Below, piece by piece: positions 42,857 through 64,000 of a stretch of 64,000 bases of DNA; the stretch's first letter is position 1, and every line of letters starts with the position of its first letter. A program made the translations under genes and the position numbers. The notes beneath the pieces were generated by a model, which worked only from the letters and a program-made list of their open reading frames with translations, made no database searches and was not told the DNA's origin. The DNA lies in the NCBI GenBank assembly GCA_904063045.1, contig CAJFCJ010000001.1, forward strand, positions 3,545,320-3,609,319, written 5' to 3'. This stretch comes from Dimorphilus gyrociliatus. Lineage: Eukaryota > Animalia > Annelida.

Positions 42857-45800
42857 TTATTTATACTGGCAACTTTTCACACGGCTAGTTTGCTTCCTTC
42901 CTTCCTTCCCCTCCCTAGTTCCTTCATCAACAGTTTAAAATCAATTGATTTACCAACAACACATTCATTTCTCTCTTTTATCTTCTACTCACTCCTCCTC
43001 TCCATTACCAAATTCTATTCTTTTGATCATTGTATTGTGCTATTCTCTGCAAGCTTTCAGCCTCTCTTTCGCAGCCCGCTGTAGATCGATTATACCTCTA
43101 TTTAGCCTATACTTAAACTAGATCACTAAAAATATTGAATAGGTCACGTAAGAAGAAACTGGAATTTTTTGCGAATTTGGGTATCCCATCACCAGCTGCT
43201 AATTGGCTACTTGGTAATCTAATCGATTTTAAAGACACGGTAATTGTTTACTATTGCGATTGCTTGTTCTACTCAATTAATTAACTAATAAATTTGATTA
43301 ACAACCGTGATTTATCCTAATAGAATGTTCACTTGAAATTGATGGAATGGGACAAAAAGCTGGGGAAGATTTTCGGGTATGAAAGCAAAATATCTAGTTA
43401 CCTTACCTAACTAATTCATTCAATTTTAATAGTATTTACGAAGCAAGCGTTCCAGTATTAGTAACGTCAGACCTGGATTTATTACAAGAAGTATTTGTCA
43501 ATCAATTTCACGCGTTTCATGGAAGAAAGGTAAATTAATATTCTCTTCATCTCCCTTTTACTCTTATTTTGCTTTCTACCGTTTATCCAATAAGCGTTTC
43601 CCCGTCCAACCGGATGTAAACGACTCGAAACGGTGCAGTATCTTTATAACAGTTGGCAACAGATGGAAAAGATTGCGAAATATCATTTCACCTACGTTTT
43701 CAACCGCCAAATTGAAAAAGGTATTTATTCTCCGAACTAATTAGTATGCTTAAAGATTTCTAAAAGGCCTATTTTACGATATTACTCCCTTTCGTTTCTA
43801 CACCAATCAGATGTGGCCGGCATTGAAAGGCTGTACTAGTTTGTTTATGTCGAATGTCGAAAGAAACGTAAAGCGAAATAATAATGGCAAGGACACTAAA
43901 GAAGACACTATTAGGAATACGCCTATTTTTAAAGATGGTTGCGAAGTGGAAGTCTACAGGTCTTTCTCTATCTTTAGAGAAAAATCCGTTGCTAACGTTA
44001 CAATTATTCCATTGAATTTTCATTTCAGTTTATTACAAAAGTTCACTATAGATACGTTCTTTAAATTGGCTATGAGCGCCGATGTTGGAGCTCAGGGCGA
44101 TAAGGAACTTCCCGTTCTAGAGGCATGTAGAGATACGTTCCGTCGAACTTCGGCCAAGCACATGTCCTTTCTCCCAAAACTAGCCCGTTAGTTCAATATA
44201 TTTACTACAATTATAATTCACTTACAATTAGTAAACAATTTGCAGTCGTCGTTCAATCAATCCATTAATTAATTAATTAATTAATTAATCGCGTCTAATC
44301 AATCAAATAATTAGTTAATTTTAATTAATTACGTTCATCAAAAAGAAAATTAATTAATATTTTATTATTTCGTTTATTGAGCAGTTATAGTTCCGGAGGT
44401 TAAAGGAATATGCCGATTCATATTTCATAATTCAAAGAGGCCGAACGAAGATCTAATGAAAGCGTTCAATTCGAATATTGTTGAACAGAGACGTAAATTG
44501 ATTGCGAAGGGTGAAAGTAATCATTTTACGGACATGGTACAGTTGCTTATTGACGCGGAACAACCTTTAAATGATAAAGATTTACTGCTTGAAGATGAGA
44601 AAAAAGGATTTGGTAAAAGTTCAAAGGTTTTATCTTCAATGGTAAATGCTTTCTTTTTAATTGTATCCCCTCTCTCTTTTATTCTTTCTATTGATGACCC
44701 CATTCATTCAATCATTTCTACATTCATTCCTTCATCTATCCCTCCATCCATCCATCCATCCATCCATCCATCCATCCATCCATTTATTCACTCATTCATT
44801 CATTCATTCATTCATTCATTCATTCATCCATCCATTCATTCATTCATATACAGCATTTATAAACATACATATACATATATATATATATATATATTCTTTC
44901 ACTTATCCTTCCATTTCCCGCTCTTCAGGAAGTGGTTAATCAACTCGTGCTATTTCTGCTCGCTGGCTACGAGACTAGTAGCACAACAATGGCTTATGCC
45001 TTCTACTTACTCGCCTTAAATCCAAAAGTTCAAGCAAAATTACAAGAAGAAGTCGATAAACTGGACGAAGAAGAGGTGATTATTTTACTTTTCAACCATT
45101 AATTTATTCCATCCTCTGTTCTTTAACAATATTTTAGGCTAACTTTGACACTGTTCAAGAAATTCAATATTTAGATTGGGTTATAAAAGAAACACTTCGC
45201 CTTTATCCCATAGCTTCAATGTAAGTAGTCCTATGTTTTATTTTCAAAAAACTGCAACAACAACAACAACATTAAAACTAACTAATATACTGTACTAGAT
45301 TACTTTTTTTTGTCATTTACTCTCCTTTAACCCAACAACAATTGACAGGGTAACTGCCAGAAGGGCAATGAAAGATGTTGAAATTAATAATGTCAAGATA
45401 CCGGAGGGAACGTCTGTTTTGGCCAATGTATGGTCAATACATTACAATCCGGATATTTGGGGACCAACCGACCCAAAGGAATTTTATCCCAATAGGTTTG
45501 TCATTCAATTTTTCTATCAGTATAATTTGCTATTTAGAATTTCATTGTCGTTTTTTTGGTCTTCAAATAGGTTCAATGGTAAAGAATTACATCCAATGGC
45601 CTGGCTGCCGTTCGGAGCTGGACCCCGAATATGCATCGGAATGAAATTTGCCATGATGGAAATGAAATTCTTACTCTTTCAATTCTTCAGAGCCTATACT
45701 ATTTCAACAGTTTAGTCTTATCGTTTACCTTTTAAAATAAGCGTCGCATAAACGAATAACCGCAATAACCATCTTTCAATACAGACTGAAAATACTGAAA

Positions 45801-57574: not shown

Positions 57575-59581
57575 TTAAAAGAATATTTGGCTTGTGTTTT
57601 TGTAGAAAGGACATAATTTGGTTAAATTTTCTATTAAAATAGTTTGTCTCTCACTTAAATGACAATTGTTAAAATTAATTTTGTTTAGGGAATTTAACGA
57701 AGACTTTAACCCTTCAAGTATTCTCTCGAATGCCTTTCCGTATCTTGTATTATTCGATAAGTTTATCTCTTGCAATGATGAGCACTTTTCAAACAAATCT
57801 CCCAAACAGTAAGCTTCTTCTTCGTTCAAGTCGCAATCGCTAAAGCTTATGTTTAAAAGCGTTTGCGAAGAGGTTGATAATCCGTCGAATATCTTCTCGA
57901 ATCCTTCTCCGCTCACTCTACTCTTCGTCATATAGAATTCTCCCAACCAAATACAATCTTTCAATAGAGCACCCAACCGGAAACCCGTTTTTTTGTTCAG
58001 TTTACACCCTGAAAGACAGATCTTTGACAATGAACGACACGAAGTGCCAAGTCCCGCGAAGAGTTTCTCAAATCCTCTTTCGGCGCATGCGCTAGAAATA
58101 AATTGAATTTCTCGAAGAGAAGTGCACTGTTCTAATAGATCACCCAAAGCAACAGTCTCCCCATCGTTGAAAGAATATTCGTCATTGTTGATTTTTAAAA
58201 GATTGCCCGAAGACGACTTTAAACCGTGAATTATTCTTCCGATTCCCTTTTTTCCGTGCTTATTATCCGTAAAGAATTTCATTTGTCGAATTGAATTGCA
58301 GCCTTTGAGAAAATCACCCAACAGACAACACTCTCCCTCAGACAATTGACATTTAATATTTATCTCTAAAAGGGAATTTGAAGATGATTTCAATCCTTTC
58401 AAGATCTTTTCCAATCCATTTTTTTGGATATCATTCTCGTTCAAGCGAATCTCTTCCAATCGCCTACAATCTTTTAATAAATTGCCTAATTTGGCACTTG
58501 ATCTTTCACTTAAACTCAACTTACCGAGCTCAAGTTTTATTAGGCAATCCGACGATGATTTTAACCCATCGAATATCCACTCTAACCCCTTTACGTAGTT
58601 GTCGGCGCCTTGAAAATGGATTTCTCTTAATGAATTACACCGTTTGAATAAGTCACCCAGCGAATATCCCTCCTCTTCGGTTAGACTAACGTTTACAAGG
58701 GCAATCTTGAAAAGAGAGGCTGAGGAGGATTGTAGGGCGATAAAGATTTTCTTTTTCAACTCGTGACCGTAACCACCGAGCGAGCACAAGTAGATTTGTC
58801 TTAACGAAGAGCATTGCGCTAAAAAGTCCCCTAACCAAATGCACACCTTTTCGTTTAGCTGAAGAGATAGTTTAACGTTTAGGAGATGTTCCACTGAAGA
58901 TTTCAATCCGTCGAATGTCTTCTTCAGTCCTTCTCTACATTTAGTGTCAAAGCTCAAATCTATTTCTTGCATCATAGTACACTGTTTGAGTAAATCGCCT
59001 AAAGAGGACGACTGTATTCCAGTCAGGGAACAGTCGATCACTTCGATTTTTACTAGACAATTTGACGAAGATTTCAATCCTTCGCAAATCTCTTGAAATC
59101 CTTTTTGCCAAGTTGCCGAATTTAAACACTTCAGATGATTTACAGTTTCTTCCAGCCGTATCACCTTTATCCAACAACAATTCGACAACAATCTTCCCAA
59201 ATAGTTGATATCCGACGACTGAAGATTGCAATTAATCATTTCGAAATTTTCCAGCAAAGGTGAAAGATGTAGTTTATTAATTTGATGATAGTTTGTTAAC
59301 GATAAGGATTTAACTGGATGATTCCTTAAAAATCCACCATTCAATCCTTCTGCTAAGTCTTTATTCTTCATCTTAACCGACGTTAATTGCATTATATTCG
59401 AAGAGAAAAAGTTCATATCGTTCAAACAGTAGTTGTACTGATCGTTACAAATATAACTAAAAATTTCCATACCAAGCGAATGAGGTATAAGCAAACAGTT
59501 CTTTTTACAAACTTCACTCATCAGACGTAAGCTTCTCACGACAAATCTAAGCGACAACTCTTTCAACTTTTCAACGTACAT
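57575..59581 (-). CDS. Intronless LRR protein 4 (668 aa), same family
   Basis: N-terminus MYVEKLKELSLRFV...LLIPHSLGMEIF; paired LRRs, more divergent than those of copies 1-3. Confidence 0.9.
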   Translation of the reverse strand: MYVEKLKELSLRFVVRSLRLMSEVCKKNCLLIPHSLGMEIFSYICNDQYNYCLNDMNFFSSNIMQLTSVKMKNKDLAEGLNGGFLRNHPVKSLSLTNYHQINKLHLSPLLENFEMINCNLQSSDINYLGRLLSNCCWIKVIRLEETVNHLKCLNSATWQKGFQEICEGLKSSSNCLVKIEVIDCSLTGIQSSSLGDLLKQCTMMQEIDLSFDTKCREGLKKTFDGLKSSVEHLLNVKLSLQLNEKVCIWLGDFLAQCSSLRQIYLCSLGGYGHELKKKIFIALQSSSASLFKIALVNVSLTEEEGYSLGDLFKRCNSLREIHFQGADNYVKGLEWIFDGLKSSSDCLIKLELGKLSLSERSSAKLGNLLKDCRRLEEIRLNENDIQKNGLEKILKGLKSSSNSLLEINIKCQLSEGECCLLGDFLKGCNSIRQMKFFTDNKHGKKGIGRIIHGLKSSSGNLLKINNDEYSFNDGETVALGDLLEQCTSLREIQFISSACAERGFEKLFAGLGTSCRSLSKICLSGCKLNKKTGFRLGALLKDCIWLGEFYMTKSRVSGEGFEKIFDGLSTSSQTLLNISFSDCDLNEEEAYCLGDLFEKCSSLQEINLSNNTRYGKAFERILEGLKSSLNSLNKINFNNCHLSERQTILIENLTKLCPFYKNTSQIFF

Positions 59582-59785
59582 CCTTCTTCTGCTCTTCCTC
59601 CTACGATTATGTTTTGTTAGAGATGGGCGAACAGTTAATCACTACAACATGATTATTCCCATGGTATCCTTCCTTATAACAACCTTACCAGCCTAATTCG
59701 CAAGTAACCTTACCAATTGTTTTCCCCCCCGGATAGAGCTGATGATTTTTGATTAATGATTGCATGCTATTATTTTCTTTACCGT

Positions 59786-59823
<38 letters not shown>

Positions 59824-60279
59824 TCTCTCCAAACTTTTTCTCTATAAACCGTAACGCTCTTAAAATGTTTGTTTGAATCTTCTCTCCTCCACTATCCTCC
59901 AATTCAGTGTTGAAAGAGTAAATACTTGCGAAAAGTAAAGGAAAATGACCCTTTCTACTCGATTTTATCCTCGGAATAATGATAGATGATATATAAAGAA
60001 TCTACGCTATAAATCTTAATCATTTATTCAAAACGAATATAGTCACTTATAATTTAACAAATGATTAAACGATTTGAATAAGAACATTCAACTATAACCA
60101 TAGTTGCCATGACTATTCCGTGGTTATAACTACAGTTGACTTTTAGCGGATGATATGAGAACTAATTAATGAATTTTATTTTCCTCCTTTTTAATTACGT
60201 CTAATTAATGTGAACAAGGATACGAAAATTTTCATCACACTTTCAAAATTGACTTGAAATTAGATATAAATTTCACATT

Positions 60280-60480
60280 CAAAATTCTGAAGATATACTT
60301 TGCAATAAATCACTCAGTTACAGAGTCTGCTTTTCATCTAGATAGCGAATGCGATGATGAATTAGCCAATCGGCTACACACTTTTCGATTTGTACATCCA
60401 ATAGAAAAGCATTCCTTTTTCGTTCAAACTACACAGACTACTTCCAAGAGATACAAGTTGATTTTCAACAGAGAAATCAT
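60280..60480 (-). pseudogene. Probable decayed fragment of a fifth LRR-family copy
   Basis: Minus-strand pieces in shifting frames match the family repeat: SLLKINL (60474-60454), CSLNEK (60433-60416), KVCSRLANSSSHSL (60384-60343), LDEKQTL*LSDLLQ (60341-60300, stop where family members have W). Confidence 0.45.
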
Positions 60481-60734
60481 CTTGAACAACACCTTCAAAC
60501 TGGTCCATAACGTCATCTTCATAATCACTATCTTAGGTGGTGAACGAATAGTCTCGAACTGCAATCTACTGCAAAAGGGGGGAAGTAAAAATTGAGAGAA
60601 AAGCTCACGTAAAAAAAGAGAACGTTGAAAATTTATTAGAGTATCAAGTTCTAAATATTTTAGCAAGAGAAAATTTGTTAAAAGAGACAACATCGAAAAC
60701 GAGAGGTAGGAAAGGAAAGAAGGAAGAGAAGAAA

Positions 60735-61736
60735 TTATTCTTCATCCTTCTGTTCGTGATCAACTTTGATAACTACGTTGCCCTTCTTATGTCCTCCTTC
60801 GACGTAGATATGAGCTTGAGGTATTTCTTCAAGTGAATAGCATCTGTCAATAACTGGTACGACTTTTCCAGACTCGGCAAGTTCTCTCATCAAATCGTAA
60901 TATTCAAGTACTGCGCCGGCTACTGAGCAAATGACTTTTGGTCCTCCGACAACTTTACGCCACAACATTTGGCAAATTTCGTACATGGCAAACACGGCCA
61001 TAAGAAAATAGCCATTCGACTGTAGAGAATATTTACAAGACGAGTAGCTCTTTTTGCCAACTGTTTCAAAGATAATATCGTATCTGACCCCATTTTCAGT
61101 AAAATCTTCCTTCGTATAATCGATAACGTAGTCGGCTCCCAAAGATTTCACCATTTCCATATTGGTTGTACTACAAACGCCAGTTACTTCGGCACCGTAA
61201 TGTTTCGCCAATTGAACTGCAGCCGTTCCAACCGCTCCAGAAGCACCGTAGATGAGTACTTTTTGACCCTTTTCAATATTTGCCTTTCTCAGGAAATGTA
61301 TTGCAGTTTCAAGACCGAAAGGAATCGATACAGTCTCCTCGTGGCTAAGATTTTCAGGTTTTTTCGATATGCACGCAGTCTCTGGCAGGCACTTGTATTG
61401 GGCGTAAGTTCCAAAACCAAATTCGGTCGAACCGTACACTTGGTCGCCCTCTTTAAACAATTTCACATCCTTACCGATCTGTTCAATTTCACCTGAAAAC
61501 AATAAACCCCAAATAGGTTGTCGCGGCGATCTTAAGCCAAACATAAGTCTGCTAGGAAGCCAAAAAGACGGCGGAATACCCCGAAAACCTCGAAGTTTAC
61601 AATCTCCAGATGTGACAACTGTCGCTAGTATTTTAATCAAGACTTCATTGGCCTTCGGAATCGGTTTTGGAATGGTTTTCAATTCAAATACACGGTCGGC
61701 TGGCCCGTAGCCATTGCACGTCATTGCCTTCATCAT
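60735..61736 (-). CDS. Intronless NAD(P)-dependent MDR-superfamily oxidoreductase (zinc-free, quinone-reductase-like), bacterial-type (333 aa)
   Basis: YGP...E.K.IPKP.PKANEVLIKI.AT.VTSGDC; GDQVYG; FGTYAQYKCLPE; KKPENLS.EE..SIPFG; dinucleotide-binding IYGASGAVGTAAVQLAK; SLGADYVIDYTKEDF; C-terminal GHKKGNVVI. The catalytic and structural Zn-ligand Cys pattern of true ADHs is absent. Confidence 0.9.
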   Translation of the reverse strand: MMKAMTCNGYGPADRVFELKTIPKPIPKANEVLIKILATVVTSGDCKLRGFRGIPPSFWLPSRLMFGLRSPRQPIWGLLFSGEIEQIGKDVKLFKEGDQVYGSTEFGFGTYAQYKCLPETACISKKPENLSHEETVSIPFGLETAIHFLRKANIEKGQKVLIYGASGAVGTAAVQLAKHYGAEVTGVCSTTNMEMVKSLGADYVIDYTKEDFTENGVRYDIIFETVGKKSYSSCKYSLQSNGYFLMAVFAMYEICQMLWRKVVGGPKVICSVAGAVLEYYDLMRELAESGKVVPVIDRCYSLEEIPQAHIYVEGGHKKGNVVIKVDHEQKDEE

Positions 61737-62589
61737 TCTTACACCCGGAATGGCAGTCGCTGTTGGAAATACTTACGTTTTTATATATATATAGCAAAAA
61801 TATACAAGGCAAACGTGTACCTATAGTACGTTACGTATCTGAATCATGGGATTTTCTACTCCTAACCCTATGTAGTCTATTATCTCGATAGGTTTTTCAT
61901 TAATCTACACCAAGTTTAGTTTGCTTATAAACATATATTCTATTGTGAAAATTCGAGTATTTTCAATTAAAAATACGAAATGTTCAACAATCTATCGTTT
62001 GGTAGAAGACTAACAAAGATAAAAAGTCTTATCGATCTTAATAAATCATCAAAATACACGGAAAGTATCGCTATATATTTACCTGAGCACGCTGACTAAA
62101 TACAACTCCAACTTTCTATTTACAGTGTCCATAAAGGTGTCACTTTAAAAAAAATGCTACCCAACGTTCATTGGAGCGTATAGAGTGATTTTCGTTGAAT
62201 AGAAAACCATCTACTAAATAACTATAATTATTCTTTTCATGTTGATATGATCGTATTTGTTCCTACAATAAAAAAAAACAGCCAAGATTAATCAAAGCTT
62301 TTATTGATGTCCGAATATTTTGGGCGTCTCCTCTATTTGCAACTTTACAGACTCAAATCCAACGTCAAACATTCATAGTAGAAAAAAATTCGTCATTTTT
62401 TAGAAAAAAGCGATTGGTTCAATGTTCCAATGTTTAATAATACGAATTGGAAATATCTAGTTAGGTTAGGGTTCGCTTCGTCAGGCGATGTTTTAAACGT
62501 AGTTGGTTAAAAAATATTGCTATTTTAACTTGTTCTAAAACTATCTACCTTACCCTCACGTGACCGAGTGTGGTAACCCCTATTCTTAG

Positions 62590-63600
62590 GTGCGTCACTA
62601 CAGTGTGTACGGAATGTTACCGTTGTGCATTTTTATTTGTTGTCGAATGTCTCTTGCTGCCCAGTGTGGGATCTGCACTTGTCGGCATGTCCCGCATTCT
62701 ATGTCCTCACACTTTCTTGTCGGCATGCTGTCTCTATCCCTTTGTAATAATCCAAGTGTCGTGATTTTGAAAAAACCTTGCCGTTTATATATTCTCGTGC
62801 CAGGTCCCGCTCCAAATGAGCTGTGTTAATGCCAGATCATGAAATTGTCGACGTTATAGCCTGTGCCGCCGTCGTTTGCTAAGACCGCGTGACACTGTCA
62901 CAGGTTGATGTTATAGCCTGAGCCATTCAGTGTCGTGCGGACTTGTTCTTCATAGCCAGCCATTTTCTTGTGTACCGTTGTAACATTGGGATTGTCTGTC
63001 ATTCCGTATTGTGAGAGCTTTCTTCCTTGATACTAATCACCCCTTCGTATACCGTTTTTTCGTTGGGGTACCGCCCAATACAACGTTTTCACTATGTTCC
63101 GTCTTGGAGTGATCTCCGTTTGAGGGTTAGGAAAAAAGTGTATCCGTGTCCGTATGCTCGTTCCACTAAGGGGTTGTGTATACTGCCTCCATTGGATGCT
63201 GGAATTACGCGTGTGTTTATCTAGCCGACTCCATTGTATGTCAAACTCCCTTGCCCCTGTTGTAATCTACCGTTTTGTTTACCGGATAGTTATGTGTTGT
63301 CTTTGATATGTTCTATGCCGTAACTGTCCTGTAAAGGTTGAGGATTTCTTGTTCGATGCTGTTATCTCTTTTGTTTGATTTAGCCTTCCACGCCGTTTTC
63401 ATAGTGGACCAATGGTACGTTAGTATTAATGGAATGATCTCTTTGCACATAAAGCCCTCTTGTTTATTTAATCTCTGTGGTATTGTCGTATCTAGCTTCT
63501 CAATCGTCTTTTCTTCCTCTCTGTAGAGTCAAGTCGTTGGCTTTGTCTCGTCTGCTACACGTCCCAATTATATCTTATAAGTTGACTCATAAGGATGCTC
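62590..63600 (-). mobile_element. Possible highly decayed non-LTR retrotransposon (RT plus C-terminal Cys/His knuckle remnants)
   Basis: More GC-rich than its flanks, SSR-free, with many stops and frameshifts. Minus-strand fragments occur in the expected order: STYKI*LG, KQEGF, TAW, ILNLY, RGKGV, RYTRKWL, then MPT...CGTCRQVQIPHW. Each match is weak alone. Confidence 0.35.
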
Positions 63601-64000
63601 CTAAAGTTTTTGTTTTCGATTCGAACCGTGTTGATGCATGTTCTATTGTTGAACCATTGTAGTTTTAATATCGTCCGTCTGGTTGTTTAAATCCTGTTGA
63701 AACTGTTCTTGCTCTGTGTTCTTGATGTCAATGGAGAATTTTCTAGCTAGCTTAGCTAAAGTAGAATTCAACGAGTTTGTGTATAGATTGAAATACTAAT
63801 ATTAAAAGTCTAGTTTTAAGGTTAAGAAGAATTTGGAAATATAAACACGAACCAAGTATTTGGAAAGGAAAATGCATCAAAACTATTCAATCTTCTAATT
63901 TGAACGATGAAACATTTCAATTTGAATCAAATCGAACATTGTTTCTGTTTGTCTTGTCTGCTTCATAAAAAAATTGTTTGCTGTTGTCCATTAAACTAGG

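Follow-up and report, generated by a model that had tools for sequence, protein, structure and literature searches.

An intronless, prokaryotic-type zinc-free MDR gene family in the annelid Dimorphilus gyrociliatus, most likely an old and domesticated transfer

Results

The MDR gene lies among animal genes

The window that we analyzed, a 64-kb stretch of the Dimorphilus gyrociliatus genome, contains no N and carries animal genes throughout, namely 7tm_1 GPCRs, FAM124, TRAF/RING and LRR genes and the exons of a multi-exon P450. Near its end, 2.3 kb from the end of the 3.6-Mb contig C1, lies a single MDR open reading frame of 333 amino acids with an ATG start, no introns and a stop codon at 60735-60737; the remaining two sense frames of the region hold 15 and 24 stops. 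Both the ORF listing and Pfam, which placed ADH_N at residues 29-124, ADH_zinc_N at 168-246 and ADH_zinc_N_2 at 199-323, bore out the intronless reading frame described in an earlier reading made from the sequence only, and all of the motifs cited in that reading were found in the translation. The start of the protein aligned with the start of its prokaryotic relatives and it therefore has no N-terminal extension, in agreement with the absence of a targeting extension claimed previously.

The sequence-only reading had placed the gene beside an LRR cluster, and the nearest gene is indeed an LRR gene on the same strand. A second proposed neighbor, a CYP gene, proved to be 15 kb off (exons at ~44926-45709, plus strand) with four LRR genes between, and this linkage was not supported. 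The MDR gene is the lone ORF between AT-rich non-coding stretches, and bacterial gene packing is absent. Between its promoter and the contig end we found no ORF of 80 or more amino acids and no Pfam-like content, a search of 59000-64000 against Rfam returned no family, and no telomere repeat was found at the contig end. Both flanks of the gene were unique in the genome when searched for host repeats and so provided no added link to the host.

Table 1. Features at and around the MDR gene (positions within the 64-kb window).
Feature	Position	Strand	Basis
LRR gene, next gene to the MDR gene	57575-59581	-	Animal gene
AT-rich non-coding spacer, LRR gene to MDR gene	59582-60734		No N, no long ORF, genome-unique, GC 0.26-0.38
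Candidate polyadenylation signal AATAAA, 98 nt past the stop codon	60632-60637	-	Read from the sequence
MDR coding sequence, zinc-free QOR/RTN4IP1-like, prokaryotic type	60735-61736	-	ORF, Pfam, homologues, AF2
Splice-like words gtaagt (61771-61776) and ccaacag (61760-61766)	61760-61776	-	Sequence; judged chance or unused
TATA box TATATATATATAAAA, likely core promoter	61779-61793	-	Sequence; first T's 57 and 49 nt upstream of the ATG
Non-coding DNA, MDR promoter to contig end	61794-64000		Genome-unique; GC-richer patch at ~62500-63300

A TATA box is conserved upstream of the intact copies

A TATA-like stretch had been noticed near 61780-61792, and a TATA-rich run does cover that position. Within it, TATATAAAA at 61779-61787 occurs only 6 times on both strands of the window. 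The genome holds two further intact copies of the gene, on contigs C127 and C48, and both have TATATAAA at -53 and -49, respectively. Apart from this box, which stands 49-57 nt upstream of the ATG in all three intact copies, the upstream DNA of the two paralogues could not be aligned. The shared placement strengthens the earlier idea of a eukaryotic promoter, from which the gene is probably expressed.

The two splice-like words that had suggested a 5'UTR intron are present where they were reported, but the intron itself was rejected. The pair spans 17 nt, far under the median intron of 66 nt in D. gyrociliatus (PMC7854359), and therefore cannot by itself be an intron; moreover, it is not conserved in the paralogues.

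The predicted protein belongs to the zinc-free QOR-like reductases

An AF2 model of the protein (pLDDT 81.7, pTM 0.82) agreed with the Pfam matches in predicting the two-domain MDR architecture, in which a GroES-like catalytic domain at the N-terminus is followed by a Rossmann cofactor domain within about 330-350 amino acids. The model matched MDR structures with TM values of up to 0.87, the closest being RTN4IP1, AOR, FaEO and QOR, and the top predicted fold matches (2vn8, 5a3j, 4ida and 3tqh) are all of the QOR type.

In classical alcohol dehydrogenases the catalytic zinc is bound by Cys, His and Cys/Glu, and most of these enzymes have a four-Cys structural zinc lobe as well. These ligands are absent from the window protein: residues 1-131 contain no His and only four Cys (at 7, 46, 116 and 122), Cys46 is variable among the aligned prokaryotic relatives, and, by our reading of the alignment, the window protein has G-L-L where the GHE motif would stand, its relatives having residues other than His there. 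A zinc-dependent classical alcohol dehydrogenase thus appears an unsuitable description. Zinc-free QOR-like MDRs carry an AxxGxxG-type motif, and a second beta strand that does not end in an acidic residue goes with NADPH preference. The window protein has GASGAVG at 164-170 and VTGVCS at 184-189, the latter matching the cofactor segment of NADPH-bound RTN4IP1, and its glycine motif, VTGVCS segment and QOR-type fold matches place it in the zinc-free group.

Two more specific assignments were rejected. The best NCBIfam match, TIGR02824 (quinone_pig3), scored 125.9 bits, far under the cut-off of 296.8, and the protein is therefore not a PIG3 orthologue. Neither is it an RTN4IP1 orthologue: against 2vn8 it scores 111 bits at 27% identity, versus 400 bits and more against prokaryotic proteins, and it has no N-terminal extension. 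An RTN4IP1-like gene was not found among the PF13602 matches in the worm genome, in a weak, exon-by-exon search. Judged from these features, the gene most likely encodes a metal-free medium-chain reductase of the QOR/RTN4IP1/AOR type that depends on NADPH and is soluble in the cytosol. In such reductases NADPH donates a hydride to a quinone or to an activated C=C bond, the substrates being enones, 2-alkenals and quinones, and the putative role would be that of reducing and detoxifying reactive electrophiles.

The gene belongs to a family of intact and decayed copies

The paralogues at C127:21085-22071 and C48:192-1178 are intact and intronless and share 65% and 64.6% identity with the window copy, respectively; the C48 copy is 100% identical to the D. 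gyrociliatus protein P0003 (CAD5126431.1) and has an LDL-receptor class A exon ~430 bp away. Like the window copy, these two are found close to where a contig stops, or on a contig that is itself small. At least 4 decayed copies, frameshifted or fragmentary, lie on contigs C76, C234, C148 and C196, so that the intact and decayed copies together are spread over seven contigs.

Among the three intact paralogues dN/dS was 0.08-0.12, with dS saturated between them. The ratio of about 0.1, the TATA box that all three share and the decayed copies as a contrast are signs of a host function, and we take the intact copies to be kept by purifying selection. We discarded codon usage as evidence of amelioration: GC3 of the window copy (0.39) resembles that of the host, but among the prokaryotic relatives it ranges over 0.21-0.84.

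The named relatives are bacterial and archaeal

Out of the best 120 matches among 5.8 billion proteins, only the worm paralogue and the Logan protein P0002, which is 70% identical and absent from the D. gyrociliatus genome, exceeded 62% identity. The remaining named matches were bacterial or archaeal, the close ones being prokaryotic or metagenomic at 55-62% identity; about one quarter of the database proteins carry names and three quarters do not, leaving room for unnamed eukaryotic members. A profile built from the four worm-type sequences gave 672-676 bits to its own members and 473 bits to the next protein. Neither the protein search nor the profile search brought up a broadly distributed metazoan clade among the named matches, which would have spoken against the lateral origin proposed earlier, or any other named eukaryote among the best ones. 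Clade-specific peptides searched against JGI metagenomes found no related sequence and no sister-species copies.

By comparison, the solved eukaryotic relatives RTN4IP1 and AOR are 27-29% identical at 100-116 bits, and the native worm MDRs are ~28% identical, their multi-exon genes having been compared as single exons only. Among named proteins the window protein is thus much closer to prokaryotic MDRs than to those of animals, and the earlier description of it as bacterial-type rather than RTN4IP1 holds. The identity of the worm proteins to those of Bacteria and Archaea matches that found between many of the bacterial and archaeal members themselves. A viral vector was considered and rejected, viral contigs reaching only 44% identity.

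The closest named relatives are annotated as 'NAD(P)-dependent alcohol dehydrogenase' or 'NADPH:quinone reductase-like' MDRs, a family widespread in Bacteria and Archaea. They are co-linear with the worm protein over the full length (~400-424 bits) and share its length, start and the invariant motifs GASGxxG, VTGVCS and GHKKGNV. Unlike them, the worm clade has two one-residue insertions and a common C-terminus, and the worm copies belong to an animal genome, with a TATA box upstream.

A phylogeny, one of the checks proposed in the sequence-only reading, gave a partial answer. The four worm-type sequences formed one clade with 100/100 support, drawn within a family that mixes bacterial and archaeal members. 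The AU test did not reject a tree with the worm clade beside the animal outgroups and outside all prokaryotes (p = 0.363, with outgroup branches of ~3.6 substitutions/site), and we therefore did not take the tree as proof of nesting. The apparent sister of the worm clade shifted with model and sampling, so that no donor lineage can be named.

Discussion

The gene studied here is integrated in the worm genome, on contiguous sequence shared with animal genes, and belongs to an expanded and conserved family. The most likely explanation is an old, domesticated prokaryote-to-annelid transfer, which upholds the lateral origin of a bacterial-type zinc-free MDR first suggested from the sequence; prokaryotic best matches, paralogues and animal neighbors all point to it. 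An ancestor of the worm lineage would have taken up a bacterial or archaeal gene, which would then have gained a TATA-box core promoter. Duplication would have led to at least three divergent, intact and intronless copies, while several later duplicates decayed and the intact ones were retained, presumably under purifying selection. We put the probability of this whole account, from prokaryotic transfer through promoter gain, family expansion and purifying selection to a metal-free, NADPH-type reductase, at about 80%.

Whether the acquisition was adaptive is a more doubtful matter. It is conceivable, if unlikely, that enone or quinone reductases were of use against the electrophiles of sediment and biofilm in a bacteria-grazing interstitial worm, or that the acquired gene replaced a native MDR in its function.

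We consider it improbable that the gene came by way of another eukaryote (a protist, fungus or alga) or a virus instead of straight from a prokaryote. The unstable sister of the worm clade would fit such a route, as would the unnamed three quarters of the database and the origin of P0002 in a sequencing run, but all named close matches are bacterial or archaeal, the coding sequence has no intron or other eukaryotic feature, and the best viral-contig relative stands at 44% identity.

It seems quite improbable that the family was instead inherited vertically from an early eukaryote or animal and lost nearly everywhere but in dinophilid annelids. The AU test permits a worm clade outside all sampled prokaryotes, and the paralogues are old, with 65% identity and saturated dS. 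Nevertheless, vertical inheritance demands very many independent losses, no other named eukaryote is found among the best matches, and the worm proteins are 55-62% identical to those of Bacteria and Archaea versus 27-29% to true animal MDR families. In addition, every copy is intronless, while the genome as a whole is reported to have kept many ancestral introns (PMC7854359).

The position of the gene 2.3 kb from the C1 end and the grazing of the worms on bacteria might suggest that bacterial DNA from the culture or gut was fused to the last part of an animal contig. This appears very unlikely because seven contigs carry the three divergent intact copies and the decayed ones, which number at least four, each copy stands alone in AT-rich DNA that is poor in ORFs, two copies adjoin animal genes and the window has no gap; the conserved TATA box, the lack of any prokaryotic protein above 62% identity and the four rounds of Blobtools decontamination of the PacBio assembly (PMC7854359) also stand against it.

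Among known structures, the worm protein has its best match in human RTN4IP1 (2vn8; TM 0.86-0.87), which has the same predicted zinc-free two-domain fold and a cofactor segment, VT(A/G)VCS...LGAD, very like that of the worm protein. RTN4IP1, a mitochondrial and NADPH-dependent protein, differs at 27% identity in having a presequence, which the worm protein lacks, and extra loops. The plant chloroplast AOR/gamma-ketol reductase (5a3j) and the strawberry enone oxidoreductase (4ida), whose structures match the worm model at TM 0.79-0.87, are the best PDB sequence matches (100-116 bits, 28-29% identity); both are metal-free, NADPH-dependent enzymes that reduce activated C=C bonds.

To our knowledge, well-documented prokaryote-to-animal transfers are few beyond rotifers, nematodes, arthropods and tunicates. 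The transfers in bdelloid rotifers (PMC3499245) and a candidate MDR-type threonine dehydrogenase in tunicates (PMC13390645) resemble the worm case in that an intronless, prokaryote-like enzyme gene lies intact and duplicated among animal genes; the worm gene differs from them in its dinophilid annelid lineage and its MDR subfamily. The main text of a compendium of metazoan transfers (PMC13342648) contains no Dimorphilus, dehydrogenase or oxidoreductase, and we found no description of a prokaryote-to-animal transfer in Dimorphilus in the searchable literature. The worm family reveals no new kind of biology. It is an unusually clean case, set in a compact, long-read and decontaminated genome and with a conserved host-type promoter, three divergent intact copies and pseudogenes, and these features together record, on a small scale, the birth and death of copies of a foreign gene in an animal.

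The worm family also offers a way into a prokaryotic MDR family that is abundant but uncharacterized, and for no member of which our literature search found a tested function. The gene neighborhoods of the prokaryotic members are not conserved and gave no clue to the substrate; upstream neighbors are heterogeneous, a few of them being second copies of the MDR gene or small membrane proteins of the DUF4386 and DUF6326 families.

An intact MDR gene among animal genes

The MDR gene near the end of the window is a single ORF of 333 aa with an ATG start. In this interval the other two sense frames hold 15 and 24 stops, so the open frame is not a chance product of AT-rich DNA. Pfam recognized ADH_N (29-124), ADH_zinc_N and ADH_zinc_N_2 in the protein; NCBIfam gave only sub-threshold matches, the top one to the PIG3-type quinone reductase model (125.9 bits, cut-off 296.8). 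The intact, intronless ORF of the sequence-only reading was thus confirmed.

The window is the terminal 64 kb of a 3,609,319-bp contig, in a genome of 77.9 Mb in 349 contigs, and harbors rhodopsin-type GPCRs, FAM124, a TRAF/RING gene and LRR genes. Since there is not one N base across the entire window, the ORF is joined to these animal genes by assembled sequence and not by a scaffold gap. Its surroundings are AT-rich and without long ORFs, over 1.15 kb on the LRR side and over the 2.3 kb that remain before the contig end. A bacterial fragment would be expected to look different from a lone MDR ORF in AT-rich, ORF-poor DNA. The published assembly was built from PacBio data with four rounds of Blobtools decontamination (PMC7854359).

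The first reading had suggested a role in detoxification near a CYP gene, presumably the cytochrome P450 gene of which two exons are in the table. This link was not supported: the P450 lies 15 kb away, four LRR genes stand between, and nothing connects the two. Two minor features of the region are a (TC)21 microsatellite within the non-coding DNA that separates the MDR gene from the neighboring LRR gene, and a GC-richer patch (GC 0.45-0.47 vs 0.31 around it) with a strong skew of T over A on the plus strand, in which we found no notable ORF, no Rfam match and no second copy in the genome.

Features of the MDR locus and related sequences in the D. gyrociliatus genome (window positions unless a contig is named)
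Feature	Location	Strand	Remark
Window MDR copy (C1)	60735-61736	-	intact, intronless; reference
Candidate AATAAA	60632-60637		98 nt past MDR stop
ccaacag	ending 61760		upstream of MDR gene
gtaagt	61771-61776		upstream of MDR gene
TATA-rich run	61779-61793		upstream of MDR gene
Cytochrome P450, two exons	44926-45060 and 45353-45709	+	
(TC)21 microsatellite	59788-59829		
GC-richer patch	62500-63300		
C127 copy	C127:21085-22071		intact, intronless; 65% identical to window copy
C48 copy	C48:192-1178		intact, intronless; 64.6% identical to window copy, 68% to C127 copy
C76 copy	C76:199668-200448		frameshifted; 84-93% nt identity to C48 type
C234 pieces	C234:10086-12601		fragments; 84-93% nt identity to C48 type
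C148 piece	C148:19411-19794		fragment; 84-93% nt identity to C48 type
C196 piece	C196:19561-19959		fragment; more distant
Separate MDR ORF (L102:769-1875)	C6:1771368-1772474	-	intronless, 368 aa

A small family with intact and decayed copies

We surveyed the family by a six-frame search of the whole genome together with local tblastn and blastn. The C48 copy is 100% identical to CAD5126431.1 (Dimorphilus gyrociliatus) and lies ∼430 bp from an LDL-receptor class A repeat exon, and the C127 copy is the only ORF of at least 110 aa within the surrounding 10 kb. Similarity among the three intact genes ends at the borders of their coding regions, indicating that the duplications are old. The dN/dS values among these copies were 0.08-0.12, a rough figure with dS saturated and a rough sign of purifying selection; the decayed copies show the fate here of copies that are not maintained. 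The C234 pieces are ordered on the minus strand in a way that implies remnants of two MDR copies in tandem.

Every intact gene is close to a contig end or on a small contig: the window copy lies 2.3 kb short of the C1 terminus, where we looked for a telomere repeat and saw none, the C48 copy lies 192 bp into its contig, and C127 is 32.6 kb long. This may reflect the difficulty of assembling duplicated DNA.

Prokaryotic relatives of the gene

In a single-sequence search of ∼5.8 billion proteins, the 120 best matches were led, after the protein itself, by a Logan assembly protein (P0002, 70% identical) and a worm paralogue (65%), followed only by prokaryotic or metagenomic sequences with 55-62% identity (396-424 bits), among them named members of Methanosarcinales, Patescibacteria, Chloroflexota, Thermodesulfobacteriota and Aminicenantes. 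P0002 is not encoded in the D. gyrociliatus genome; another dinophilid is its probable source. When the four worm-type sequences (the three intact copies and P0002) were combined into a profile, they scored 672-676 bits against it and the next protein reached 473 bits, with no further annotated animal members of the clade in the protein collection searched. Species-representative genomes from many phyla of Bacteria and Archaea carried family members with 49-56% identity, and relatives of up to 44% identity occurred in viral contigs; clade-specific peptides found nothing related in JGI metagenomes.

Eukaryotic MDRs were far more distant. The nearest solved eukaryotic structures, strawberry enone oxidoreductase, human RTN4IP1 and Arabidopsis chloroplast AOR, scored 100-116 bits and shared 27-29% identity in fold alignments, bearing out the proposal that the protein is closer to bacterial MDRs than to animal RTN4IP1. 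Two native worm MDRs, compared directly as single exons from C15 and C7, were ∼28% identical to it. Other native MDRs matched the FAS enoyl-reductase domain, PTGR2 and MECR. No RTN4IP1 orthologue appeared among the PF13602 genome matches compared with solved structures, a weak, exon-by-exon search that took in FAS ER domain, PTGR2, MECR and zinc-ADH-type matches; the PIG3-like match on C7, a C2 fragment and the long open frames of C14 and C15 were outside this comparison.

We built one tree of 133 rows (quick search, LG+G4) and a second from a 65-row subset chosen for taxonomic spread (careful search, LG+C20+F+G4 PMSF), using the single exons of the two native MDRs, never joined, as outgroup. 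The first tree took every top match to P0030 and every third thereafter, and 70 of 80 prokaryotic genome loci, the other ten having tblastn segments shorter than 300 residues or containing a stop. In both trees the four worm-type sequences formed one clade (100 SH-aLRT and 100/100 support) inside a family in which Bacteria and Archaea were thoroughly mixed; this mixing suggests that the MDR has often been transferred between prokaryotes. The apparent sister of the worm clade differed between the trees, so no donor can be named. Constraining the clade with the animal outgroups, whose branches are ∼3.6 substitutions/site long, cost 12.1 log-likelihood units (AU p = 0.363); the tree is thus compatible with nesting within prokaryotes but is no proof of it.

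Support for the core of the first reading, lateral acquisition of a bacterial-type MDR, comes from where the family occurs, from the drop in identity from 55-62% for prokaryotic proteins to 27-29% for eukaryotic ones, and from the intronless state of the gene in a genome that reportedly retains many ancestral introns (PMC7854359). We put at about 0.8 the probability of an old, domesticated prokaryote-to-annelid transfer that expanded into a small gene family. GC3 was uninformative as to origin: the window copy (0.39) resembles host genes (0.30-0.43), but prokaryotic relatives span 0.21-0.84.

The genome paper (PMC7854359) does not discuss transfers into Dimorphilus, the main text of a 2026 compendium of metazoan HGT (PMC13342648) mentions no Dimorphilus, dehydrogenase or oxidoreductase, and a literature search on annelid HGT and quinone oxidoreductase found nothing relevant. 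For tunicates, acquisition by HGT has been proposed for another MDR, one of the threonine dehydrogenase type (PMC13390645). The Dimorphilus gene is therefore a fresh, well-supported example of a phenomenon already known.

The intronless C6 ORF is 21% identical to the window protein; among solved structures it comes closest to zinc alcohol dehydrogenases of Archaea and Bacteria, of Sulfolobus and Geobacillus types (∼110-117 bits). It could be a native ADH or a candidate for another, independent transfer.

A shared TATA element upstream of the intact copies

The upstream words noted in the first reading were all present. In each of the three intact copies, TATATAAA(A) begins 49-57 nt upstream of the ATG, in DNA that is otherwise no longer alignable. 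The nine-base form occurs 6 times across the two strands of the 64-kb window, or ∼0.1% per 30-nt target, so its common position is not due to chance. The TATA box would have been inherited from an ancestral copy and conserved, or gained repeatedly.

The proposed 5'UTR intron was not borne out. Together, gtaagt and ccaacag span 17 nt, vs a median D. gyrociliatus intron of 66 nt (PMC7854359), and they are absent from the paralogues; we regard both as chance occurrences. Trans-splicing is reportedly lacking in this worm (PMC7854359).

A predicted metal-free NADPH-dependent reductase

An AlphaFold2 model from a 21-sequence alignment (mean pLDDT 81.7, pTM 0.82) had its best fold matches, at TM 0.79-0.87, in human RTN4IP1 with NADPH (2vn8), Arabidopsis gamma-ketol/alkenal-one reductase (5a3j), strawberry enone oxidoreductase (4ida) and Coxiella quinone oxidoreductase (3tqh). 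Residues 1-131 contain no histidine and only four cysteines, Cys46 is variable among prokaryotic relatives, and where zinc ADHs have GHE the protein has G-L-L, so that, judged from sequence, both the catalytic and the structural zinc site should be impossible. The glycine motif is GASGAVG. The next strand ends in VTGVCS, matching NADPH-bound RTN4IP1, and lacks the acidic residue that NAD-specific MDRs typically carry. The protein starts exactly where its prokaryotic relatives start, which argues against a targeting peptide and agrees with the earlier observation of no N-terminal extension. We infer that the enzyme works in the cytosol without metal, using NADPH to reduce activated double bonds or quinones.

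The upstream neighbors of 78 prokaryotic relatives were heterogeneous; in several loci the gene immediately upstream was another MDR copy or encoded a small membrane DUF (DUF4386, DUF6326).
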